A program made the position numbers and the translations under genes. A DNA stretch of 64,000 bases from Takakia lepidozioides (lineage: Eukaryota > Plantae > Bryophyta), in contig CM060732.1 of the NCBI GenBank assembly GCA_030704615.1, positions 6,386,001 through 6,450,000 on the forward strand. Reading direction: 5' to 3'. Shown in pieces: positions 1,637 to 63,379 of this stretch. Positions within the stretch are counted from its first letter, which is position 1. The number at the start of each line of letters is the position of its first letter. A model generated the notes under the pieces. The model had not been told where the DNA came from and made no database searches. It saw nothing but the letters and a program-made list of their open reading frames with translations.

Positions 1637-2612
1637 CGGGTGTCGGGTGATAACTCGTCTCATGATCCGCGGCCTGATGGATGATTGGAGCACTAGTCAT
1701 ATTCGTAACCGCGACTGAGATTACGAAGGCCGTTACTATGTAACGTACAAGACAAATCAATCAAATATGTCAACAAAACATGGCACAATGACACAATACC
1801 ATGAAATGAAATGAAAGACAATGGGGAGACATTGATGATAAACAACCAGGTTTTATTTCAGAACCATGTCAATTTGAGTAAGTCTCGCCCCATGCGGCAT
1901 GGACCAATACAAGTAACGTAAACCATGTCAATTAGAGTATCAACTTCTAGAAGGAGGGCTGAACTCTGTTAGCACAAGACGATGTCGGCCGACGTACTTA
2001 TGATGAGAATATTTTGAGGAAAGTCATTTCCCAAAATCACGATATTTTGACAAGGTTGGAGGGACCATTTTCAAATCTGTATTCTTCCGTTGTTCCGAAG
2101 GTTGATGGAAGAAGTACATGAAATGTTGTCTCGAGAATCGTTGATATGGTGATGACCTCACAAAAAATATCCTCCAATATTACACCAACAAACAATGTCT
2201 TGTGCGACCGAAGTTCAGCTGTACTTCTCGAAGAATTGGTGGTCTTGCAGACTTTCAGTGAATCGCGAAGATGATGAATTACTCGTATGCTCTTCAAAAC
2301 ATAATGTCTAAGTAACTGACCCTGGAGTAAGATGCTGAAAGTATCCAATTGGGGAGTAAGTATGTTGCTCGTATGCTTCTGGAGAGTGGCTCGGTGGCGA
2401 GTACGTTGATGGAGAGAGTGACGTTTTCTGCAAAATCTTCAAAGGAAATAATGTCGGGTGACCAGTCGAGGTTCATCTGTGACGGGCTGTGGTACTTCTG
2501 ACGATTTACTGTAAAGCACTCGTAAACTAATCACCAACTAAATAATCTCTAACTGACTAACCACCAACTAACTGATTGGAGCTGTCACAAGCAATGTCAA
2601 AAATCCTATTTA

Positions 2613-3034
2613 CTGCTAGGTGTTTGATGCTATTGTTGTTCCTATAGCTGAATTGTATAATAGTCGTTTTGTTATTCCCATGCGAACAATATCAGCCCCT
2701 AGAGACTGTCATATTCAGACTCCCAAATCAGCTACGGCCCACCATCATTGACCAATATAAAACCATCAGCTGCATGTCAGCTGACAACCAGATCTTCGAT
2801 TCATTGTATACGACTCCAGAGAAACACCCTAGCCCACAAGTAGTTGGCCAGCAGCTTGAGATATTTCTCCGGGCTGTGATTGAATGAACTGGAGATTTCA
2901 TTCTTAGCTGATGGTTTCATGTAGGTGGTGCCTAATTCCGATTTCGGAATATGGCAGTCTCAGTGGACCTGATATTGTTGGAATGGGAATAGCAAAAAGA
3001 CTCCTATAGAAATCAGCTACGTGAATTTACGCAG
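2613..3034. mobile_element. Fold-back MITE, possibly Tc1/mariner type (TA flanks)
   Basis: 2645-2770 is an imperfect reverse complement of 2905-3020; the termini read TA|CTGC...GCAG|TA. Confidence 0.5.
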
Positions 3035-3112
3035 TATTAAGCACCTTGAAGTACATATGATTGTTGAGATTGTTTGCACAGATTGTTAGCGACGGTGTTC
3101 CTCCTTTGGCGT

Positions 3113-3395
3113 CCACCCTCCTTGATCGGCAACTGGTGATATCCGGATCGTAAATCCAAAGTGTTAAAGACCTTGGCATGCCCAATGGCAACAAAGATCT
3201 CCTCTGGTGTTGGAATGACATACCTATCGGACTTGGTCTGACGATTTACAGGCCGGTAATCACCGCACATACGTCTCTCCGTCCAATTGCCATAGACATC
3301 CTTCTTGGCTGGCATCACTGTGGCTGAAGCATACTCTCCTCCAGATAGCTCCACCAAACCAACCTCTGGGAGGTCCTGAGTCCTCATCTGAATCA
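3113..3395 (-). mobile_element. Ty3/gypsy RT fragment, inverted relative to the adjacent RNase H-integrase
   Basis: EYASATVMPAKKDVYGNWTERRMCGDYRPVNRQTKSDRY...TLDLRSGYHQL (N-terminal RT motifs). Confidence 0.9.
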
Positions 3396-5072
3396 AGGAT
3401 GATGAGGGAAGAGAGTTCGTAGTGGCTTATGCTAGCTGCTCGAACAACGCTGCAGAGATTAAGTGTAGCTCATATGAGGGAGAGTGCTTAGCTGCAGTGT
3501 GGGCCATGGCACACTTCATGTGCTATCTATACGGCAATCTCTTCACCCTTGTCACGGATCACTAGCCACTCAAGTGGTTGATGGAGTCAGACAAGCTTAC
3601 GGGGAAGCTTGCATGGTGGGCACTCATACTTCAAGAGTATGACTTTCAGATTGTGCATCGACCGGGTTTGGTCAATCGGGATGCGGATGGGTTGAGTCGC
3701 AATCCATGCACGAGCCAGCAGGATGACACTGGAGCTCGGTGGCATGGTGAGACGGACGAGGAGATGGTGCCCGGATGGCATGCATCTGCATTTCTATGTA
3801 TCTTGGCAGCGGAAGGCCAGGTTGGATCTACAACAGGGATGACTGTAGACCGAGTGTCTGAGGATCTTGAGGCCAGCAATGAGCAAGGTGGCGCCAAAGA
3901 TATACATGAGGATTCAGCTGTGTTGGACTATCTCCGCACTAGAGACACGGCAGCCACTGTGACTGCCAAGGAGAGGGATCGGATCCTACAACGAGCCAAG
4001 AGGTTCAAGTGGGAGGGGACACACCTGCTCCGAGTGTGGGAGGATGGTCGAGTGAGGATTGTGCCTCACCCAACACAGTGGGCACGGTTAGTGCGGCATG
4101 CCCATGAGGAGTTGGGGCATTTTGGGGTGCGACGCACTCATAGTCTACTGTAGAGGCAGTATTGGTGGCGTGGTATGCACATAGAGGTGCAACAATTTGT
4201 GGCTAGGTGCATGGTGTGTGACAGGGTGCGTGCTTCATTCAACGCCCCTACACCACAATTGCACCATATTCCGATCATGGGATTGGGCTACAGGTGGAGT
4301 CTTGACTTCGTAGGGCCGTTGCCACTGACCATGCGCCACAACAAGTACGTGTTGGTGATGGTGGAGCACTTCTCTAAGTGGATCGAGTTGGTTCCATTGT
4401 CTGATAAGGCTAGTGAGGGAGCTACGTAAGCATTCTTGGATCGTGTACTTAGCTAATTCGGTGCTCCAGCTGAGGTACTCACGGATCAAAGGAGAGAGAG
4501 TTATTAAGGGAGTTTCAGGCGTTGTCTGACAAGGTCTTGATAGACCACCGCACCACTTCTCGGGATCATCCTGAGGCCGATGGCTTGGCAGAGAGAGTTG
4601 TGCAAACAGTTAAGAGAGGATTGCGCAAGTATGGTTTGCAGAAGGGGCACCTAGGAGATTGGGACCTTCAGCTATCTTGGTTGGCCATGAGCTACACGTT
4701 TAGCAAGCAAGCATCACTTGCCTCGTTCTCACCTTATTTCCTTCTCTTTGACCGAGAGCCAGATTTGCCTACATCTATTCACAGGGAGGCTGCAATAGTT
4801 CTCAATCTTGATGATCCGGACGTGTGGGCACGTGCATGTGGTCAACGCGCGGAGTTGTTTAAGAAAGTCATGCCCATGGCTTTCGAAAACCTTGCCATTG
4901 CACAACATCGTGATACGTTGAGGTATGCTACCATACGTGGTGGGGGCTATCATCCTAGGGTTCGGAGATTTCACCCTGGTGACTATGTTTATCTGCAGAA
5001 AACTGCTCCAACGACCTTGGATGTGACTGCAGGACGTGTTATTTTGAGGGTTCGAGAGGTATTGCCCTCAGG
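3396..5072 (+). mobile_element. Ty3/gypsy RNase H and integrase, degenerate
   Basis: VVAYAS...YEGECLAAVWA...WALILQEYDF...ADGLSR; HHCC finger (HEELGHFG...CMVC); WSLDFVGP; DGLAERVVQTVKR; several in-frame stops. Confidence 0.92.
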
Positions 5073-5759: not shown

Positions 5760-6445
5760 GGCCTCTAGGTACTTTAGATGTGCATCCTATTCCTCCTTGT
5801 TCTTAGGCCATGGAAAGTCCTAGCGATTAATGAATTTCACTCTAGCATCCTTGTCGTGCGCATACGTATCGCTACACAACTACATCGTTGTCCAAACCAC
5901 ACCACACATATATGCACAATAAAATAGTCTGCCACAATCGCCCCCCCTAGCTGGTGGTTAGGTCCCTCTAACTCCAGATAGCTACAAGATGTAATAGCCA
6001 CAGCCGTACTAAGTCCTCTATCACTGTCCCTATTGTACTCAAACTCTATAGACCAAGAGGTCGGGTACAAGAGTAGCCCCATCATTAGTCGTCGTCTTGC
6101 AATCTGTGAACTTGAGCCAGGATCTCATGTGTTGGTCTCCTAGTAGCTTGGCCTTGCATTTCTTGTTAGCCTTCCATGGTTGTATCCACTCCCACTATCC
6201 AATGCAATGCGGACATAACCAATCCCCATCAGGAACCATCTCAAGAGGTGGAGTCAAGCATCCCATATACCAACCTCTAGAGCATTGATCACACACCAGC
6301 ATGGTGGCTGCCCCTCTAGCAGACCCACACAACATGCACCTCAAACTTGCAGGTACCACTGCCAGGTTTGGGTCAATCCTGCCATCGACATTCGGAAGGT
6401 GACATGGCGCATAATTACGCACATGGTCCTTCCAAGTCATGCCAT
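5760..6445 (-). mobile_element. Integrase C-terminus with PHD finger, polypurine tract and start of 3' LTR (inverted block)
   Basis: WKDHVRN.APCHLP...CMLC...CDQCSRGWYMGCLTPPL...WLCPHC (C4HC3-type, His replaced by Tyr). PPT AGGGGGGGCGAT at 5937-5948, followed by LTR start TGTGGC at 5936. LTR 3' limit is uncertain. Confidence 0.8.
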
Positions 6446-40767: not shown

Positions 40768-43700
40768 ATGGTGGGTGAAACAGTGAGAAGCTGAATTCAC
40801 AACAATCCAGTCTCCCTCCCTTTCTTGAACAGACAGTTGCAACTACCCACACAACTACATATGGTTGCAAGACAAGAAAAAATTTGGTGGGCAATAAAGA
40901 GCACCATCCCTATGATCAACTCAAAAGTCTTCTGTTATATGATAGCTCAGAGTGAAAGAATAACTTATGCTTAAGCCAAGGATAAGCCAAGGATAAACAT
41001 GTTGTAATTTAACTCAGAGGTCATGCATCTGTCAAAGTGCCTTGTTCACACCATGCTCTCTTTTCCTTAGGAGCGGGGAAAATTGTTATTCAACTTACCA
41101 GCCTTCTTCAATGACAAAACATCTCCTTCACTCCTGCTTTGTGCGAGCTGATGCAGGTCTAGGGAGCATGCATGCTTGAAACCTTGTTGGCTTGAATCAG
41201 ATGGTTTGTTAGAGTTAGGCCCTGCATTATTGTTCATGGGCATAATTACTTGTTTTATCTTGATGCAGGAATTCCAGAGCATTGACTCTGGGGAAGGGGG
41301 CAGCACACCACCTCCACTGGGTCGGACACCAGAGCCCTCACGGAGGTGGCGTGATGTGTTCTGGTTGGTTGTGTTTGTGGTTCACTTGCTCGGCTTTGGA
41401 TTTTGTCTTGCAGTTTTGGGCATGGACAGATTTCGGTAATGACTCTACTGAATATCAACCAGATACAGATGTGTACCAGGATAAAAGGATAGGCACAAGA
41501 AAGGAGAGCATTTTTTGTAAAAGGAGTGGTAAATGTGAGTCAGCAGAAGGTTGAGATGAATCGCATTTTGATAGAGAGAATGCACTCATGCGGTTCCCTG
41601 CGAATGTTGGCTTGCCATAGCCTTATGGTCATTGACCCTGCGAGAAACTAACCCTCCGGATCCTTTTGTGGGTTTCGCACTTCACACCCGCCAGAGATTG
41701 TACTCATAAGATGTTGTTTGCCGTAGCCTTGTGGCCATTGACCCCGCGCCCAGTTTGAGCGGGAATAAAAGGGACAGAACCTACCTCTGTCAGGGGCTGA
41801 CGTTGGTAGTAAGACTTACCTCCATATAAAGAGTTAATCTGGGTTTTCCAGATATCCTCTAGAAATCCCTTCACACAAGCATCAATCTGCTGTGTGTGAT
41901 TTGCCCAAAAACTAGGCCTCAGGAGGGCCTGGGCTTTTGGCTCAGCCTCGAGACTTTCAAAGTTGGTAAACAGGGGTACAGGCACAATTCCCTTAATAGA
42001 TTTGAAGAGAGCGTCTCTTTGGTGAGAGAACCCCGGACAGTGTATCAGAAAATGAATACTGTCTTCAGATTGCCCACACAACGGGCAATTGCACTCTCCC
42101 TTTCCTCTCTGCTTCTGTTTGCTGTTCAAAGGTAGGCTTCCTGCCCTGCGTTTAAATTTCAGTCTAGTGCCGAGAGTGGGTAGACCCTTGAGGTCATCCA
42201 AGATGTCCTCCCCCATGTCACTGACTGGAAACAAGTTCAGGGAAGTTTTCTGCCTAACTTCATTTTCATCAGACAATCTCATGGCAACAGACATGGCTTT
42301 GGACACTACAGCCTCTAAGTCAGATTTATCCAAGACTTGCGGATCCAGGTCCAGGTCCTTGAGAATCTCTTCTACTCTCTTCTGCCAGGACTTAGCCTGT
42401 TTGACAGGGCGGTCCTGTTTCCAAGATATAGAGTCGATTAACTTAGGATATCTGGTGTTGGACATATGTTGCAGCTGACCCCACCATCTGACCTTGAATT
42501 CATCTCGTCGGGAGCTTAAGGACGGAATGCCAAACTCACCCCGAACAGCCACATTGGCTGTTTTGGAGCATGCTGACATACACTCCTTAAGCACCCCCAC
42601 TTGAATGGATTCTAGAGACTTAGCCTGGTTGGAGTTATCAACCCATATTGCAGATCCGTACTCCAAGGCAGGTCTAATAATGCGACAAAGCATGGTTTTC
42701 TTAACCTCAGAGTTGACCCCACTGCAGTGGAAAAATTTAGTGAGCCCCAGAGCTTTGCCCTTGCCAGTTTGAACAACTTTCCGGATATGTGCATCCCAAT
42801 TACAATTGGAGGAAAACTCAACGCCCAGGTAAGTGTAGGAAGGGAGGACCGGGATCTCTTGGCTACCCCACTGCCACTTAAGATCACTTCCTCCCTCTCC
42901 TCTGTCGTTGAATGCTACCACTGCACATTTGCTGACATTAGCCTCTAGCCCCCAAAGATCAAAGTATCTCTTCGCGCAATCAATCAACTCCTGGAGATTG
43001 GTTGGAGTCTCCCCTATGCCTGCGAAGTCATCCGCAAACATAAGGGCTGGTAAGGTGGTATCACCCACCCTTAACCCAAATCCCTCACTTTCCACATCCT
43101 CGAGGAGTTGATTGAAAACATTGAAGAGCAGAGGGGAGAGAGTACATCCTTGAGCTACACCTTGGTCTATGTCAAAGAAGTTGGACTTCTGTCCGTTAAC
43201 AGTGACACAGCTTTTGGTGTGAGCATACAAGTTGTGGACAACTCTCCACATCTTTCCCTTGATCCCACAAGACCAGAGGCGGAACCATAGGCCATCTCTC
43301 CATACTGTGTCATAAGCCTTTTTGACATCCAGGAAAAAAACATAAGTGGGTTTCCCTTCTTTTTTCCTTCCCTGGATAATCTGGCTTAGAGTGAAGATAT
43401 GATCCACACAGCCCCTGTTTCGCCGAAAGCCAGCTTGGCCTTCGTGGAAACAATCTCTAGACTCCAGATCAACCTCGAGACAAGTACTTATAACTCTGCA
43501 GAATGTCTTGCCAACAGCATTGAGGAGCGTGATGCCACGGTAGTTCCCCGGTTCTTCTCTGTCACCCTTCTTGTATAGATTGACAATGACCCCCTGTCGC
43601 CAGCGAAAGGGGATCATTTCAGTCTTCCAGATAAGGTTAAAGAGGAGAACTAGGGCCTCTATCATGGGATCGCCACCGTGCTTGATAAGCTCGTGACAAT

Positions 43701-46700
43701 ACCATCAGGTCCACCAGCTTTATATCCATTTAAATGTTCAATTGCTTCCACAATCTCAGAAGAACTAATGGGAGCGTTATAAGCCATTGAAATATACTCC
43801 AGTTCATCAGGGCTGTTTCGAATCATAGGAACAGTTTTTCCAACTGTGTCCCTCCATTCAGCAGAAGACCCCTCACTGTTAGACCTAGAAGTTCTGCCAA
43901 GGATACTGTAGTGAGTTTCAAAGGTTTTGACAATGTCAACCGATGAAGTCACCACTGCACCTTTAGTAGTCTTCAGCGCTTGTACTTGCTGACCGTTTTT
44001 CGGCTTGTACAAACGTTGAAGGGCCAACGAGAATTTCTTGTCATTACCACCATGGTGGTTTGAGTTTATTTCACTGTATAACTTGTCCCAGTATAATTTC
44101 TTCTGAGACCTAACAAGCTGATTGATATCTTTACGGAGCTGGTAGTACCTCGCCCACAATTCTCTGTTGGTTTTCAAATTGCAGCACTCTTTATAGAGGG
44201 CTCGTCTCTCAGCTATCTTGAGTTTAATCTCATTGGTCCACCAATTAACAGCTATACCGCAGACAATTAGTTTCCTCCCAATGATCTTGTCAGCCACGGA
44301 GGAAACGAAACTCTCCCAAGAGTCCACTGCTCTTTCGACTTCATTTCTTGCGTTGTCAGAGCGAGACTGAAGTTCTTGGAGCGATTGGACAAAATGGGGG
44401 AAAGCCTCTTGCAAGGCCTGGACATACTCAGCCTTGACCTCCTCATTATGGAATTTTTCTATGCGCCACTTCCGAATCGAACGTTTCACAGATCTCTTGG
44501 TGTTGGGAAAACACCTTTTGATCTCAGTCCAAACCAGGAAGTGGTCAGAGGTACCAATATCAGTTCTGTCGATCAACACATTGGCACACTGGGGAAACAA
44601 ATTTTTGTCCATTATGATATAGTCCACAATGGAACGTTCCCCAGTTTGGGATTTCTCACAAGTCCACTGCACTTGGTCACCTCTTGTCCTGTTATTCAAG
44701 GTCAAAAGCTGAAGCTCTTCCAGACAGTTAATTAACCGTCTGCCATTAGAATTCAGCTCGTCCTCACCAAAAGGCCCAATGATATCGTCCTGATGGAGCC
44801 CTTTGCCCACCCGGGCATTGAAGTCACCCAATAGCACCACCTGACCTTTGGCAAGGAACGAAGCACAGTCCAGCTTTACATCTTCGAAGGCTTTGTCTGC
44901 GTCAACACTAAGGGTCCCCTCTGTGGGCATGTATACACAACCCACAAAGAGGTCCTTTGTATTCACGCCCTTCAGATTCAGTTTTAGCCAGATACTATGC
45001 TCATACCTCAAACCCTTGTTGATAATTTCACAATTATCAAACAAGAAATCGCGGACAAAGAATCCAACCCCTTTTTGGCCGCGTTTGGCAGAGGCTGCCT
45101 TGAGAGTACACATCTTACCCGTCCACTTATACCCATTGACATCTCCAACCAATTTATCCAGAGTTTCCCATGTCTCCTGACCAGCACAAATATGAATGTT
45201 ATTGGCCTGAAGAACTTGTGCCACTTCGAGTTGTTTCCTTTGGTTAGTCAGCCCTGAGAAATTGAAAGTACCCAGCCGCAAGCCAGCCCTTTGCATATGA
45301 ACTGTTTGTCATAGCTTGTGATTGCTCCTGGACGGCCAACCGTTCTGCAAAGGGGGGACAGTTACCCCGTGTGTAGATTTTGCTAGAATTGGTAAACCAT
45401 TCAGGGTACCAAATCCTTCAGTTACACGACGCACAGGCTCCGCCCACTGGACAGATTGTCCGTCTGACTGCTTGGGGACAATTACCCCGTGTATAGATTT
45501 TGCTCGTCTTGTGTAGACTTTGAGGATTGGTAAACCATTTAGAGTACCAAATCCTTCAGTTACACGACGTTCAGGCTCTGCACACTTAGGGACAGATTGT
45601 CCATCTGACGGCTTGGGGACAATTACCCCATGTATAGAATTTGCTCGTCTTGTGTAAACCTTGAGGATTGGTAAACAGTTCAGAGTACCAAATCCTTCAG
45701 GTTCAGGACGTTCAGGTTCCGTACACTTAGGGGCATCTTGTCCTTCTGGCTGTTTGGATTCAACCTCATCCAGAGCATCAAACCGATTAGAAACTCTCAA
45801 GTTGAAGTCCTTGCCCTTGGTTGTCTTCCTAGAGCGCCCCATTGAATCACCAATGTCTAAGACCGCTCTCCAGCCAGTCAAGGGACAAACTTCTTTGAGA
45901 TTGAATTGATGTGGGACTCTATTAGAAGCACTTTTGGTCATTGCAACCTTCAACGTACCCCTGTTATCAAGTCTCGAGATGGAACCATTAGCCATGAAAT
46001 CCAAGCCTAAGCTAGAGCATGTAGTTTTAAAGGACACATCGTCCATCCTGGGATTCACCCCAAAAACTACACATGAAGCCCTAGATTTGGCATAAGTAAC
46101 CAATTCCCAGGAATCACCTTGAGGAGTGTTGATGTTGATAGGAGCTAAAATTTTGATTGTTGTCGCAGGCTATAAGTTTAAGCACAGGAACCAACCCGAG
46201 CCCAAGTGCCAAGTATGCTAGACAGAGCATACGACTGCCCAATTTGGGCAGAGGGGCTGCCCCCAAGCGGTAGGGGTCCGCTTGTTACCATTCAGAGATC
46301 ACACTCCAGGGAGTTGCAGGGAATGGCCCGTGTAGGCATATTCTAAAGAGGGAAAGGCCCCAAGCTTTCCAACTAAATCCAATGCACTACCTTACCTGGA
46401 GCAAAGCGCTTCAGGTCGAAACAAACAAGGACACGAGGTCACAAGGCCGGCATTTAGTCACAGAGACATTAGTGTACTCCCGTATCAAGTCCACCCAGTG
46501 GCAATAGGCTTCCTAGAGGACAGGGAGAGAGAGAGAATGCAGACGTTGTTTGCTGTAGCCTGTGGCCATAGACCCCATGCCGAGTTTGGGCAGAACGACA
46601 GGGAATGGACACTACCTTTGTGAGGGGCTCACTCCAGTAGTGGGACTTACCTTGGTATAAACAATTCTTCCGGGCTTTCCAGATTTCCTCTGGAAGTCCC

Positions 46701-56842: not shown

Positions 56843-57221
56843 CTACCTCTGTCTAAGGCATCGTGGACACAACCATTCTCCAGTAAGAACCTCATCCAGT
56901 GGCGGTGTCAAGCATCCCATGTGCCACCCCCTTGAGCATCTATCACACACCATCATGGTGGCGGCACCACCAGCATGCTCACATAACATGCAACGCAACC
57001 CTGCAGGTACGATTGCAAGGTTGGGATCTATCCTCCCATCCACATGTGGAAGGTGACATGGCGCACAATTGTGCACATGGTCCTTACATACCATGCTATC
57101 TCGACCTCCAGAATCAACACTCCTGAAGGCAACACCTTTCATACCCGTAGAATTACACGTCCTGTTGTGACATCCAAGGTCGTTGGTGCTGTCTGCTGCA
57201 GATACACATAGTCCCCAGGGT
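56843..57221 (-). mobile_element. Second Ty3/gypsy integrase C-terminus with PHD finger
   Basis: PGDYVYLQQTAPTTLDV...VLPSGVL...KDHVHNCAPCHLP...CMLC...CDRCSRGWHMGCLTPPL...WLCPRC; homologous to 4975-5072 plus 6195-6445. Confidence 0.9.
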
Positions 57222-57729
57222 TGTAGAATAATAGGAATTTCTGGTTAGGCTATGATTTTAAGACTTTTTAACGCATTTTCTTGTCGATATACTCTACGAT
57301 ACCTTCGATATTGCTGCGATAGAGCAGTGTTCCTCGATATTTTGTAAACAGTCAATAATATGTCCTTGACTAGATGATAGAAGAAATAAATAGATGACTA
57401 TTTTGGATGGATAGAAGAGGTTGCACGGTTATCGAAGTTGTTGGAGCAACTCTGCTATTTATTCCGTTCATGTGAAATAGATGATGTCAGATGAGCCAAA
57501 AGAGCCGTGACCAAAGTAGAGTGGGTCTGTGTGTGTGTAGGAGCTAGAAGATAGAGTTATTTCTCAATGGTAGATTAGTATTGCGATATTGCAATGTAAT
57601 GTTTACGAATGAATAGAAGAAAATAAGGGAAAGAAGTAAATTCAATTCAATCTATTTTCTTTGAGAAATGGAATGATGGAATGTGAAACCGATTCTGAAT
57701 GTAATGAATGGAAGATTATGATTGTGTGA

Positions 57730-57998
57730 GATGGTGAGAATTTGCATATTGAAGAAGATGATAATTCTGTGCGGGAATTAATCCCTGGGCTACCATATCA
57801 ATTCTGATATTTAATAGTCTATTATGTAATGATGCAGAATTAGTGCAATTAGAGAGTGTAAATAAAGCCTGGTATAAGGAGTTTATAGAACATTGTTATC
57901 TGAGATGTAAGTGGATCCAGATGTGGTGTTGTCTTTTAGATGGATATCCAAAATATATGAAGACGCGAATAAAAGACTTTGGGGTAGGGAGTCCTTGA
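57730..57998 (+). pseudogene. F-box-like micro-ORF 1 within the LTR (frameshifted)
   Basis: ELIPGLP/(frameshift)SILIFNSLLCNDAELVQLESVNKAWYKEF. Confidence 0.55.
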
Positions 57999-58043
57999 TT
58001 GAATTAAACAAGAGAGATTAATGGTGAAGAAGAGGGCATCTGA

Positions 58044-58328
58044 ATGGAGAAGTTAGATGATGAAGAAGTAAGAGAATCGTCAGAGTTGATTACTAATTTA
58101 CTAGACAATTTGTCGATATATATCTTTAAGAAGCTGTGTTGTAGTGATATAGAGATTATCCAATTACAGCTTGTGAGTAAGGGATGGTATAGGGAATTAT
58201 CTATCCTTTATAAAAAAGATTATTGGAGAAAAAAAATAGTTGAGCAATGGTATTTAATTTCCGCCGATGGAGCAGAGTTCATAGAGGATGTTTATGAAAT
58301 CTGGAAGAATAATGATCGTGTTAGATGA
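58044..58328 (+). CDS. F-box-like micro-ORF 2 within the LTR (94 aa, intact)
   Basis: ATG start, acidic leader, then ELITNLLDNLSIYIFKKLCCSDIEIIQLQLVSKGWYREL; paralogous to micro-ORF 1. Confidence 0.55.
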   Translation: MEKLDDEEVRESSELITNLLDNLSIYIFKKLCCSDIEIIQLQLVSKGWYRELSILYKKDYWRKKIVEQWYLISADGAEFIEDVYEIWKNNDRVR

Positions 58329-60949
58329 AGATGACTGGTGTTAAAAGTCGATCCATTGAAGGGATAGAGAGAGAGAGAATAGTCTAGCATCGTTATTTCA
58401 CAATCGTATAGTGCTTTCCTTGTGAACGAACCTCGAAACTAATTGATCCTTTTCCTAGGGTTGATTCTAGTTTTTATTCTACATCTTTTTGGCGCTGCTG
58501 CCGGGGAAAGACTATGCGGTTGAAATAATGATATGTTGATCACAATTTCTAAGATTTTCTTTTGATTGGTGTGACTACCAAAGAAAGGCGGGATGACGGG
58601 GGAAGTCATTCGTGACAGTAAGATTCCACCACCTAGTTTAAAATTATGTCCTTTTTGCAATCCACGAAATCAGCACAAAAAGACAGAAATTCCTGAATGT
58701 TATGGAGTCAGAGGAAGAAGGCTAAATCGATTGAACCTTCAATTTCTAAGGAAGACGGAGATGCTACCCCTAGCGGTAGGCAAGGAGGACCAGATAGACT
58801 TATCACCTAAACAGGGGGAGCAGGTGACGACACTAGAATTGTCTATCGCAAGAAATCAAGGAGATCGTCTTGTGTTTTCGATAAAGAAGAAAGGGGTATG
58901 GGGAATGAGGGAATCCCCTGTGAGAAGGGAACATCAGGCTAAGGCAAGGGCTGAGCGATTGGCAGTGCGAATAGCACGACGTGCATTATTAGCCGCATAG
59001 CTAGCTGCAGTATCAGCACCGCCTAACGTACCTCCTATCGTATCTATCGTACCGCCTATTGTACCAATATCTATGGTTGCGGCTGTACCCATTGGAGTTA
59101 ACTCACAGTCGATTCCGGTGGTAGTGAACTCGGGAGGCCCGGGTGATAGACTAGTCAATGTATCGCCTATGCCACAGTTCACTGGTCTATCAACATTTGG
59201 CCCAGTTTATGACGGCTTGTATCGCCAACAATGCTAGGACAGAAGATTGGTGGCGAATGATGTGGAAACGTTGCGTGAGCTACCTTTTCAATGGTACAAT
59301 CGTCAACCTCATGGCATCTATACTGATTGGAATGCCCTAAAGACAACCTTTCTGACTCAATTCAGGCCCTTCGGTTTTACCAATCGTTTGCGTGAGCAAT
59401 TGACTAAGCTCCACATGGTGGAAGGTGAATCAGTCAGCTCCTTTGCGGGACGATTGGAAGATATCCTCCAGCGATGGAATAACCATAACATCCCTGACCA
59501 TATGCAGATGGGTCTTTTTGTGGAAGGATTGATGCCACAGGAATTGAAGCGGTTTGTAAAAGAAGGAACATTGGCCAACCTCCAAGCAGCCCTCAATCGA
59601 GCTAAATTATGGGAAACTATTAATGTCTCCACTTATTCAATTGCGCTTGGCAGGATATTTGATACTAATTCTTGGGCCTCAAGCTTCGGTATCCGTGTTG
59701 CCATCGGCCATAGTTTCATCACCTCAAACTACTGTGGGAATGTATGCCCCCACGTCCTTGTAGAATCAGTTACCAACTGGTGTAGTAATTGATCCGCAAG
59801 AAGGACAGATTGCCGCAATAACTAAGAGCTCTCCGTGCAATTGGCTACTAAGAAAGAAGGAAGGCCAAAGCCAAATAATCAGAGAGCCAATATGTGGTGC
59901 TCTACTTGTCAAGTTCAGGGCCACCCTGCTAATGAGTGCCCATTAAACCCAGTGACCAATCCTACTAATGGAACTGGCGTCAAATGTGGATATTGTGCCA
60001 AGACAGGACATGTGATATTGTAGTGCTAGAATTTGCAATCGGCCATGGGATTGGCCCCAGTTAAGAATAATCAAAGGACTGGATGGGATGTTAACCAAAT
60101 TGGTTTAGCAAATTGGTCTGAACAGGCTTCTCAGATGCAGCAGCCATGGCGACCAACCCGGGGACCACAGAGCTGGTATCAGCCAGCTAATCAGCCCGCT
60201 CGACAGCAATTGAGGGGAATACCATCTCAGGGAGCCTATGGACAATCTTATGGAGGCGGACAGCAATAGCAAACATATTCGCAGCAGTCCAATTCTTCTT
60301 ATCGACCTCCTGCTCGGCGATTACGGAATGGACAATATCCGATTTGTTTCCGTTGCCATGAGCTTGGTCATATTGCTAATGAGTGCCCCAACCGCAAGGC
60401 TCTTGTCGATTATATACCATTGTGTGGTCATTGTGGTGGTCAAGGACATAATGCGGTGTAGTGCGATAGCCTGCGTACCCGCAAACCCCTTTGCATCAAC
60501 CGCCACAATCGGCACCAATGCCACCAGTATCGAATGCGGTTCATTCTGCACCAGGGCCATTTCATTCTTTTGGGCCATCTAATCCCACTCGCCCTGTCAA
60601 TTGGCTCAAGGTGCAAGACTGTTTTGAAGATACGAGTTGTTTGGCTGCTTCATTATTTCTCGATAGTCTGTCCATGAAGACTAAGTTGAAGGGGAAGTCT
60701 AAGCTCGAAGATGAGTTATCTGGCGGTCAAGCAATTTCCTGATGGCCTGCCTTGGATAAGGAACATCCAACGGTGAAGGAGTGACAACAAGACAGCGCAA
60801 GTTGCTCCCTATGGACCCTATCGTAGAGGAGAATGTTCCAAAGATGGCTGATATTACCCCAGTATCGCTGCCCATTGTGTCCGAAGGTATAACCCTGCAT
60901 GCCGCGGAGTGACGTGGTGAGATTTCACTGGCGCCCTTTTTTGGCCGCC

Positions 60950-63379
60950 ATCGCATTAAATAGTTGCAGACCCCTCATACGTGCTGTCGGTATGCCACTG
61001 CACGGACAGACTTGTATGCCACTGCACAGACAGTCCAGCAGACGGAAGGTTCAACAGAATGAAGAAGAGACTGAGGCAGACTGGATGAGTGGGACTTTCA
61101 TCAGTCTGCCGTCGCCGCATTCATTAAGTCCAGCAGACTTACTCTTGATGACAAATACGGCCGAGCAGACCCAATATTCTCAACAACAGACTCATATGCC
61201 ATCGCAAGGACAGACTGACGACTGAGGTTAAGTGGACTGACGAAGAGACTGAGGCGAGTGCGGAGTCTGGTGCGGAGATTGATGACGTGACGCGACGTGA
61301 CTGGGCCTCCTTACCGACGTCGTTGCATTTATTGCGTCCAGCAGACTTACACCTAATGACAAAACGGCCGAACAGACCCACTGCAAACAAACTTGCATAA
61401 CAGACTCATATGCCACTACACGGACAGTACAGCAGACGGAAGGTTCAACAGACTCACGAAGAGACTGGCGCAGAGTAATTTGCGCGACAACAGACTGATT
61501 TCTAACAAACTAATATCCCAAAAGACAAACTATCCCCTAGACGGCCGGGTGATACGGGAGTAGAGGCTGAACCGTAAACCGCACTTTCTATCCGAGTTCG
61601 AACGCGGTGCGAGATCATTGGCGCCCCTTCCCGCCGTCGTTGCATTAATAGGTCCAGCAGACTTACACGTGACGGCTCAACAGACCTAGCGCAAATAGAC
61701 TTGCGCCACAGTAGACTAACTTCGTGACAGTCTAGCTGACTGATATCAGAAGAGACCGACAGACCAGCAGTCCGACGGCTCAGCAGACTCACGACAATGC
61801 GGATAATTAAAAGGTAGTAGTTAAACGGACTCATATCTGAAAAGACGGACTTCCAGCTGACCGACGGTTCAACAGACTGACGAGAGAAGAGACTTCGGGG
61901 ATAAGACGAGAGAATAGACTTCGGAATTCGGCAAGCAGTGACGGCCCAGTAGTCCACTGAAGAACAGACTCGCGCCACACCAGATTGGTATCCCTACACA
62001 CCAACAGTCCAGCAAACCAGACTGATATCCCATCAGAACCACACTTGGCGTCGCCGTCATGCCGTGGTTGCATTTCATCCATCCAACAGACTTACATATG
62101 CCCATACTCATAGCACAACACACTGCTTAGAGAAAGTACTGACAAAGACGCAGTCGAAGAGCCTATTGATCCACGCACATTTGCAGTCATAAGGACCTTG
62201 AACATCCACAAGCAACGTGAATCCACATCTCTCAGGCTACGTCTCCTTTCCCATTGTCCAATTTGCAAGGAGTCGGTAATGGTTGAGATATGATGATTCA
62301 GGAGGTGCATCTGGATGTTTGAGGACCTTCGGACTGGATCCTGTTCCGTTCACACTCTTCGCAGTTCCCAGACATGTTGTTGTGGTGGCAGAGACGTCCT
62401 CCCCTGAACAGTCTCATCGATGGACATAAATTCTGCAATGTATACACTCCCCCACGTGCATATGCTTCCGCGATTTCCGCTATCGTGTTACCAATGGTTT
62501 CCTGCTCCATACGAAGGAGCTCGGACTCGGACACACACCACAAACCGTAAACGCATGCAATTTTTCCACATATCGTCCTAAAAAATAACCACGTCAGCAC
62601 AAAACGAAGGCGAAAATAGGGGAAGCATATGCACGATGGTGGCTGTAGAGCCCCGCCAACCTTCTCATGTTCAGGCACACCCTTCATCGTCATTAAAATC
62701 ACCCTAAACAAGAAGAACAGCCGCGTGCGTGCAAAGTCAGCTCCGCAACATTGGACAACAAAGAGCCGCAAGAACGAGACAACAAGAACGAGTGGCCGAG
62801 TTTGTGGCAGGATGTTGCGATTTTCCATGCCCTAAACATGGATGGCGCGGATGGGTTTCTCAGAATGGACGATCCAGATCCTTCGGCTGGCGCGGATTGG
62901 CAGACTGGCAGACTGGGGGCAGTAGACGGGCACAACGGACTGTTGGGTGGACTTGCGGGGACTGGCACAGCGGACTGGCCGGCAGACTGGCGGTTTGGCG
63001 GACTGAGGGGAACTGGATTCACGGACGGACTGGGGGCGCGGCGGAGTGCGGGCGGGGCGACCGCGCGCCCGGGGGGGGGGGGTCCCGGTGGGGGCCGGGC
63101 GTCCGTGCGTGGGGCCCACCGGTCAGCTCGTGTGTGCGCCATAACGTCCCAATTATTGTAAAAGCCTCTCATTTTTTAATAATTGGGACTTGAATGCACC
63201 TATGGGCCCCGCCAGTACGGCCCACCCCCCTTTCACCGGGTCTAGATTCTGAATTTTTTCTAAGTCCTAGATCTTTAAGGGCGGTGGACCTTCTAGCGGA
63301 CTGGCCAAACCCTCAACAAACTGACTCCAACTGACGAGCGGACTGACGAGCGGACTGGCGAGTGGCGAGCGGAACACTG
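60950..63379 (-). mobile_element. Partial hAT-like DNA element with one visible TIR and CAGACT/GACTG-rich internal repeats
   Basis: Terminus CAGTGTTCCGCTCG at 63379 interrupts a SINE; subterminal GACTGACGAGCG repeats at 63320-63370; repeated GTCCAGCAGACTTAC / ACGGxxxxTTCAACAGAC blocks at 61000-62100. No second TIR or transposase was recognised. Confidence 0.55.

Follow-up and report, generated by a model that had tools for sequence, protein, structure and literature searches.

The LTR of a truncated retrotransposon in the Takakia lepidozioides genome carries, on its sense strand, a tandem pair of small paralogous units which, as judged from the way their codons have diverged, appear to have evolved as protein-coding sequence during much of the time after their duplication, and the F-box is the only protein family that any method indicates for them. 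The element was found in a window (the whole stretch of DNA analysed here, 64,000 nucleotides in length), and the positions given below are those of the window. Our best explanation, which we put forward tentatively as having a little less than an even chance of being right as a whole, is that the segment is the 5' LTR of a truncated Ty3/gypsy-type element with a tandem F-box-like cassette, whose products may dock on SKP1 and whose expression may depend on its placement in U3. The features on which the account draws are as follows.

57222 to 58483, plus strand: 5' LTR, 1262 bp, GC 35%, with TG..CA ends and a 10-bp inverted pair
57730 to 57807, plus strand: N-terminal piece of copy 1 in translation (..EEDDNSVRELIPGLPYQF, then a stop), corresponding by eye to about ORF2 residues 6-20
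57795 to 57998, plus strand: main piece of copy 1 (ISILIF..CND..VQLESVNKAWYKE..), in a different frame from the N-terminal piece; a pseudogene in this LTR
58044 to 58328, plus strand: ORF2, an intact F-box-like mini-gene of 94 aa with an ATG start, its F-box-like core formed by residues 17-51
58209 to 58217, plus strand: TATA-like box TATAAAAAA inside ORF2, a sequence motif and candidate LTR core promoter
58490 to 58506, plus strand: PBS-like site TGGCGCTGCTGCCGGGG, TGG plus 14 nt, 6 nt 3' of the LTR end
59247 to 59792, plus strand: gag capsid-like domain (PF03732 Retrotrans_gag, E 1.1e-11)
59835 to 60460, plus strand: gag C-terminal region with several CCHC zinc knuckles, interrupted by stops (PF00098, E 8e-6)

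An initial annotation of this DNA had described a 1.26-kb LTR with 10-bp inverted termini, and this is borne out by the 1262-bp segment with TG..CA ends between 57222 and 58483 (first bases TGTAGAATAA, last bases TTATTCTACA); the units (57730 to 58328) also lie inside it, as had been stated. The primer-binding site, ascribed in that annotation to tRNA-Asp, is present as a PBS-like site at 58490-58506 in a region that is well conserved across the contigs of the family. Neither a tRNA gene nor a second matching LTR was found anywhere in the 64-kb window. The assignment of the segment as an LTR draws on the TG..CA inverted termini, on the adjacent PBS-like site, on the gag region downstream on the same strand and on its repetition in the genome with the same edge, the last of these being seen in contig depth and in a break at 57221/57223. 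The left edge is backed independently of the termini, because many contigs of the flanking repeat switch to differing sequence exactly at 57221/57223. Base composition within the LTR is asymmetric between the strands, the plus strand having 9-11% C, 21-25% G and about 65% A+T, and the differences among LTR family contigs are mostly transitions.

The sequence into which the LTR is inserted is itself an extreme-copy repeat (56843-57221), with a summed depth of about 150,000-365,000 against about 65 for single-copy sequence, and the repeat depth of the immediate flank, 57000-57221, is several-thousand-fold. On its minus strand this repeat encodes a PHD finger (PF00628, E 1.2e-10), and two further diverged copies of it are present in the window at 6186-6445 and 4973-5072. 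The window as a whole is rich in transposons, including LINE-type open reading frames with endonuclease and reverse-transcriptase domains and fragments of RT/RNase H. One LINE-type element on the minus strand, 41704-45296, has endonuclease (544 aa) and reverse-transcriptase (653 aa) reading frames that are apparently intact, and diverged or inverted partial LINE copies lie near 46.5-51 kb, 15.3-16.2 kb, 20.9 kb and 53.4-54.1 kb.

Downstream of the LTR the element can be followed through gag and then breaks off. No protease, reverse transcriptase or integrase of the element was found after about 60.5 kb, family similarity stops near that point and family depth drops to about single-copy past 60509; the element has therefore been cut short, by truncation or by interruption, and any 3' LTR must lie beyond the window. 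It is best explained as a truncated LTR retrotransposon with a gag of the Ty3/gypsy type, and since it breaks off after gag this locus is probably dead, a decaying, truncated copy. The sole gag relative found is a protein (P0003, 58% identity) encoded on an AT-rich metagenome contig of 3912 bp (L001). This contig includes an LTR end, its PBS (TGGCATCATTGTCGAGG) differs, and its 530 bp of LTR contain no F-box-like sequence; we assign it to a distant family that is not the one described here. Directly past the break of the element, at 60980-62100, diverged repeats containing motifs such as CAGCAGACGGAAGGTTCAACAGA recur irregularly at a spacing of about 180-400 bp, in an array which Tandem Repeats Finder did not detect. 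In a GC-rich segment farther on (62700-63200), both strands have open reading frames of 136-157 aa that overlap, and there are short repeats of the GGCAGACTGG type.

The two units are clearly related to one another and differ in their state of preservation. Translated comparison of copy 1 with ORF2 gives a tblastn E of about 1e-6 with 38-40% identity, and their local BLOSUM score of 99 was reached by none of 2000 shuffles, which scored 26.4 +/- 5.0. Copy 1 is split: its N-terminal piece (..EEDDNSVRELIPGLP, ..ELIPGLP) occupies a single open frame from 57730 to 57804 that closes with a stop at 57805-57807 and has no in-frame ATG, the ATG at 57731 belonging to the third frame and running into a stop after 16 codons, and its main piece (..WYKE..) is open from 57795 to 57995 and ends with a stop at 57996-57998. 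Owing to this frameshift the LIPGLP motif and the remaining unit are not translatable together in this copy. Of the two paralogous sense-strand reading frames of the initial annotation, then, the paralogy stands, on both the tblastn and the BLOSUM shuffle comparisons, as does the intactness of ORF2, whereas copy 1 does not hold up as a reading frame, having no ATG and being divided between two frames; nor can LIPGLP be counted, as it had been, as a hallmark within the reading frame of the unit, since in copy 1 it sits in a separate frame from the remainder. A candidate third unit upstream, at 57414-57524, was rejected, its score of 33 falling inside the shuffle range (95th percentile 36), and no further copies of the unit occur elsewhere in the 64-kb window.

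The length of ORF2 alone is not evidence of coding, because when this C-poor LTR is dinucleotide-shuffled, an ATG-initiated reading frame of at least 94 codons turns up in 6.7% of cases. The argument for coding comes from the manner in which the two units differ. Their codon alignment, which was selected at the protein level, covers 44 codons with 56 nucleotide differences (58% nucleotide identity) and 19 of 44 residues identical; random placement of the same differences would leave 11.8 +/- 2.1 identical residues (P = 0.00075). The sum of BLOSUM scores is 112, against 25 +/- 17 in the simulations, and 97% of the neutral simulations pick up a stop. By Nei-Gojobori counts pS is 0.69 and pN 0.37, with dN/dS about 0.27 and dS near saturation. 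In the proposed frame the residue identity is 0.43 and the BLOSUM score +2.55 per site, as compared with 0.17 and -0.24, and 0.29 and +0.36, when that nucleotide alignment is read in the two shifted frames, where 9 and 14 stops occur. Block-like conservation of a non-coding enhancer repeat would not be frame-specific, which argues that the units evolved as coding sequence during much of the time after their duplication. The protein-level likeness despite diverged DNA to which the initial annotation had drawn attention is thus confirmed, being frame-specific and exceeding chance (19 of 44 residues against 11.8) at 58% nucleotide identity.

What family such proteins would belong to is less firmly indicated. 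The only Pfam matches of ORF2 are PF00646 F-box (E 0.01; 16.2 bits against a curated cut-off of 20.5) and PF12937 F-box-like (E 0.083; 13.1 bits against a cut-off of 24.3), both of them below the cut-off, with ORF2 residues 17-50 aligning to positions 2-33 of the 43 in the F-box profile; the pieces of copy 1 have no Pfam match. Among 10 control reading frames of similar size from the window the best Pfam E was 0.073, and in none of them were two related families matched. In a language-model atlas all named families among the matches listed for ORF2 are F-box (0.94, 0.90 and 0.88), and among those listed for the main piece of copy 1 the named ones are likewise all F-box clusters, at 0.87-0.88, which is the level of a lead. 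The motif of ORF2 reads L-L-D-N where the canonical F-box has L-P-D-E, copy 1 having the L-P in its separate frame, and by eye ORF2 has a two-residue insertion relative to canonical F-box spacing between I-F and K-x-W.

Structural comparisons returned no F-box. The AlphaFold model of full-length ORF2 has a pLDDT of 53.7, and single-sequence modelling of residues 12-69 gives three helices, confident in one of five models (pLDDT 81; the others 48-64). With this core model, confident in that one of the five, a Foldseek search of the PDB produced no match to an F-box fold, a wide VIA-align search produced generic helical matches (best Z 5.1) with no F-box among them, and an atlas fold search produced unrelated rows with no F-box among the matches listed. 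We do not count these fold searches against an F-box identity. A profile search with both units against PDB sequences likewise recovered no F-box protein, and weak unrelated matches only. The initial annotation had described the units as F-box-like microproteins and proposed comparing both with F-box profiles; in that comparison ORF2 falls short of the gathering cut-offs (16.2 against 20.5 and 13.1 against 24.3) and copy 1 gives no match. Its identification is favoured by the F-box families being the only ones matched in Pfam and by the language-model neighbours, and is weakened by the scores below cut-off and the silence of copy 1. Genuine F-box kinship of the units is suggested, not proven, by these sequence comparisons, and we regard it as somewhat more probable than not.

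Searches of public data place the family outside what has been annotated. A word-based protein search found no homologues of ORF2, its exact product is not on record, and an exhaustive profile search of 1.84 billion protein representatives recovered no true relatives, the two matches obtained being rejected as spurious, low-complexity repeat proteins. Viral contigs contain no relatives of the units, and metagenome contigs gave no matches to the protein pattern or to a 25-mer spanning the LTR end and PBS. Because public protein predictions and viral and metagenome contigs contain no detectable relatives, the unit family is, as far as sequence searches can tell, lineage-restricted and unannotated. 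In the literature we found no report of F-box reading frames or F-box-like genes inside retrotransposon LTRs.

Within the genome itself the cassette is not unique. The sequencing runs consist of assembled contigs, from which transcript starts, ends and strand are not readable, and copy number was gauged in the DNA run X1 as the summed depth of contigs of at least 80% likeness, a rough measure for which the exact contigs of this locus, at depth 62-70, served as the single-copy reference. Summed depth over the region of the reading frames (57726-58209) is 620-1494 in X1, or roughly 10-23 times single-copy, and at the LTR ends it is 2600-3700. This rough measure implies that the cassette exists in about 10 or more related copies, and that more copies have just the LTR ends in common. 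The initial annotation had allowed that the segment might prove to be a one-off insertion, and would then have abandoned its proposal; this does not apply to a segment present in multiple copies (620-1494 against 62-70). A separate contig, 404 nt long and about 85% identical, runs from the 3' portion of copy 1 through a substituted spacer into ORF2, most of which it covers, showing that the two-unit architecture is present elsewhere in the genome, and no contigs were found that skip the whole cassette. In a major variant of the family 9 nt are inserted and 1 nt is deleted near ORF2 codons 83-85, and the C-terminal tail of ORF2 is accordingly not conserved.

No RNA contigs cover the reading frames in two probable RNA runs. 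We note that these same runs contain contigs about 85% like 58393-58730 (LTR end, PBS and leader), which diverge for more than 250 nt upstream of 58393. Because of that divergence they point to a related family and not to this cassette, and it appears that a related element family with another LTR body is transcribed, or is present in those runs as DNA.

A roughly three-fold increase in family depth that begins at bin 58210 suggests wider conservation of the 3' part of the LTR from about that point. Given the single TATA-like motif at 58209 and this step in depth at 58210, we infer from sequence features that the core promoter, R and U5 would occupy the last approximately 270 bp of the LTR, and the cassette would lie mostly in U3, immediately 5' of the TATA-like box and extending over it. 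With the cassette so placed, the promoter of the 5' LTR seen here would not drive the copy that this LTR contains. By analogy with retroviral genes situated in or across U3, expression would be expected from the 3' LTR copy, on an RNA that is 3'-coterminal and either spliced or internally initiated.

The mechanism that we propose begins with a family LTR that would carry very small protein genes as a cassette duplicated in tandem. A unit would encode about 90 residues, acidic at the N-terminus, with a three-helix core like that of an F-box and, after it, a short helical tail rich in W and K; the core would follow the pattern L-x-D-x-L-x-I-x-I-F...L-C-x-D...Q-L-x-x-V-x-K-x-W-Y-x-E, and there would be no substrate-binding domain. 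The products may be F-box-only microproteins that dock on the host SKP1, and docking could either titrate SKP1, the microprotein serving as a decoy, or bring a target to SCF by way of the short tail, in which case it would serve as a minimal adaptor. A bolder version of this account, which we consider improbable, is that in the lineage of the element the LTR array is translated into F-box-only microproteins which, by docking on SKP1, bring about the degradation or titration of a host factor holding the element in check, and that the array is present in both LTRs and in solo LTRs.

The principal competitor to our preferred explanation is that the LTR took up part of a host F-box gene, which was duplicated there and has since been carried without benefit, ORF2 being a leftover and the constraint having acted early or in the host gene. 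That retrotransposons capture gene fragments is known, fragments of an F-box gene in Drosophila telomeric elements being an example (PMC13534243), and a passenger of this kind would fit with copy 1 being already a pseudogene, with the indels by which the tail of ORF2 varies among copies, and with the two probable RNA runs having no contig over the reading frames. Against it, the units, which neighbour each other at a distance of about 310 bp, have fallen to 58% nucleotide identity, yet one frame has stayed open and conserved; their divergence is most simply placed after duplication within the LTR, so that the constraint would have operated with the cassette already part of the element. The search of public proteins, moreover, recovered no longer relative of host F-box type. 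We consider this origin unlikely on balance, and the nearest in probability to the one we prefer.

Two further explanations seem to us quite doubtful, and equally so. If the duplication were a non-coding one of the enhancer type, tandem repeats being common in U3, then the reading frame and its F-box likeness would be products of chance in A/T/G-rich, C-poor sequence; the reading frames of at least 94 codons in 6.7% of shuffles, the sub-threshold F-box scores and the lack of a structural match are all compatible with this, but the conservation depends strongly on the frame and the replacements are conservative, more residues are identical than neutrality would predict (P = 0.00075), and two differing methods indicate the same protein family, Pfam for ORF2 and the language model for both units. 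Alternatively, the small proteins may serve the host or have been domesticated by it, as a family of mini-genes to which the LTR, including solo LTRs, supplies a promoter and a means of dispersal. F-box genes as a superfamily tend to expand in particular lineages, which would suit such a role, but this copy is decaying, neither of the two probable RNA runs has a contig over its reading frames, and public protein sets contain no annotated relatives.

If the F-box-like cassette is what we propose, its closest known counterparts in architecture would be the retroviral accessory genes situated within the U3 of the LTR or overlapping it, namely MMTV sag, HIV/SIV nef and the foamy-virus bel/bet genes, and its closest counterparts in function would be the viral F-box mimics. 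In the retroviral genes, as here, sense-strand coding sequence lies within the LTR of a reverse-transcribing element and is consequently copied into both LTRs in each cycle. Those, however, are single genes with unrelated folds that belong to infectious retroviruses and have known spliced mRNAs, whereas the present case is a tandem array of F-box-like units of about 90 aa in a retrotransposon, with a placement in U3 that is itself an inferred one. Viruses and parasites that exploit SCF through F-box or F-box-like proteins include poleroviruses (P0), nanoviruses (Clink), poxviruses (PRANC proteins) and Agrobacterium (VirF). The likeness to these lies in a mobile or parasitic element encoding a short, and here putative, SKP1-docking motif without a substrate domain of the classical host type; the differences are that no sequence kinship is detectable, that ORF2 is without the proline of the LP motif and that the carrier is an LTR retrotransposon. 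For kinship with P0-type proteins of poleroviruses in particular, neither the viral contigs nor any of the protein sets yielded relatives of the units.

Cellular F-box proteins, of which SKP2, beta-TrCP and FBXW7 are familiar examples, are resembled by ORF2 in the pattern L-x-D-x-L-x-x-x-I-F-x-x-L ... L-V-S-K-x-W-Y-x-x-L and in a D-x-W-R-K motif after the core, which recalls the D..LW+ usual after an F-box. ORF2 departs from them in its sub-cut-off scores, in its total length of 94 aa and in having no LRR, WD40, Kelch or FBA domain. Additional reading frames beyond gag and pol have been described in plant LTR retrotransposons, and the conclusion of a review of these (PMC7264820) puts them between pol and the 3' LTR, the phrases 'within the LTR' and 'in the LTR' being absent from it; a study from 2026 (PMC13534243) reports fragments of an F-box gene captured by telomeric non-LTR elements of Drosophila. 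These cases share with ours the presence of extra coding material beyond gag-pol and provide a precedent for F-box gene material in a retroelement, but they concern reading frames between pol and the 3' LTR or fragments in non-LTR elements, whereas here the units are mini-reading frames in the LTR, arranged in tandem and with a signature of selection.

LTRs are customarily treated as non-coding promoter and terminator modules, although accessory genes have been described from retroviruses and a few plant elements. Even if the cassette should turn out to be a captured fragment only, it would still document gene capture and tandem amplification within an LTR, with a period of constraint at the protein level. 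If the units are expressed and bind SKP1, they would represent an entry into the host ubiquitin system that is encoded by a transposon. Such a cassette would make the element a testable candidate for retrotransposon counter-defence, and solo LTRs could act as a source of dispersed small F-box genes; and should the bolder and less probable version prove true, in which a host restraint factor is degraded or titrated, the family would constitute a retrotransposon counterpart of the viral F-box mimics.
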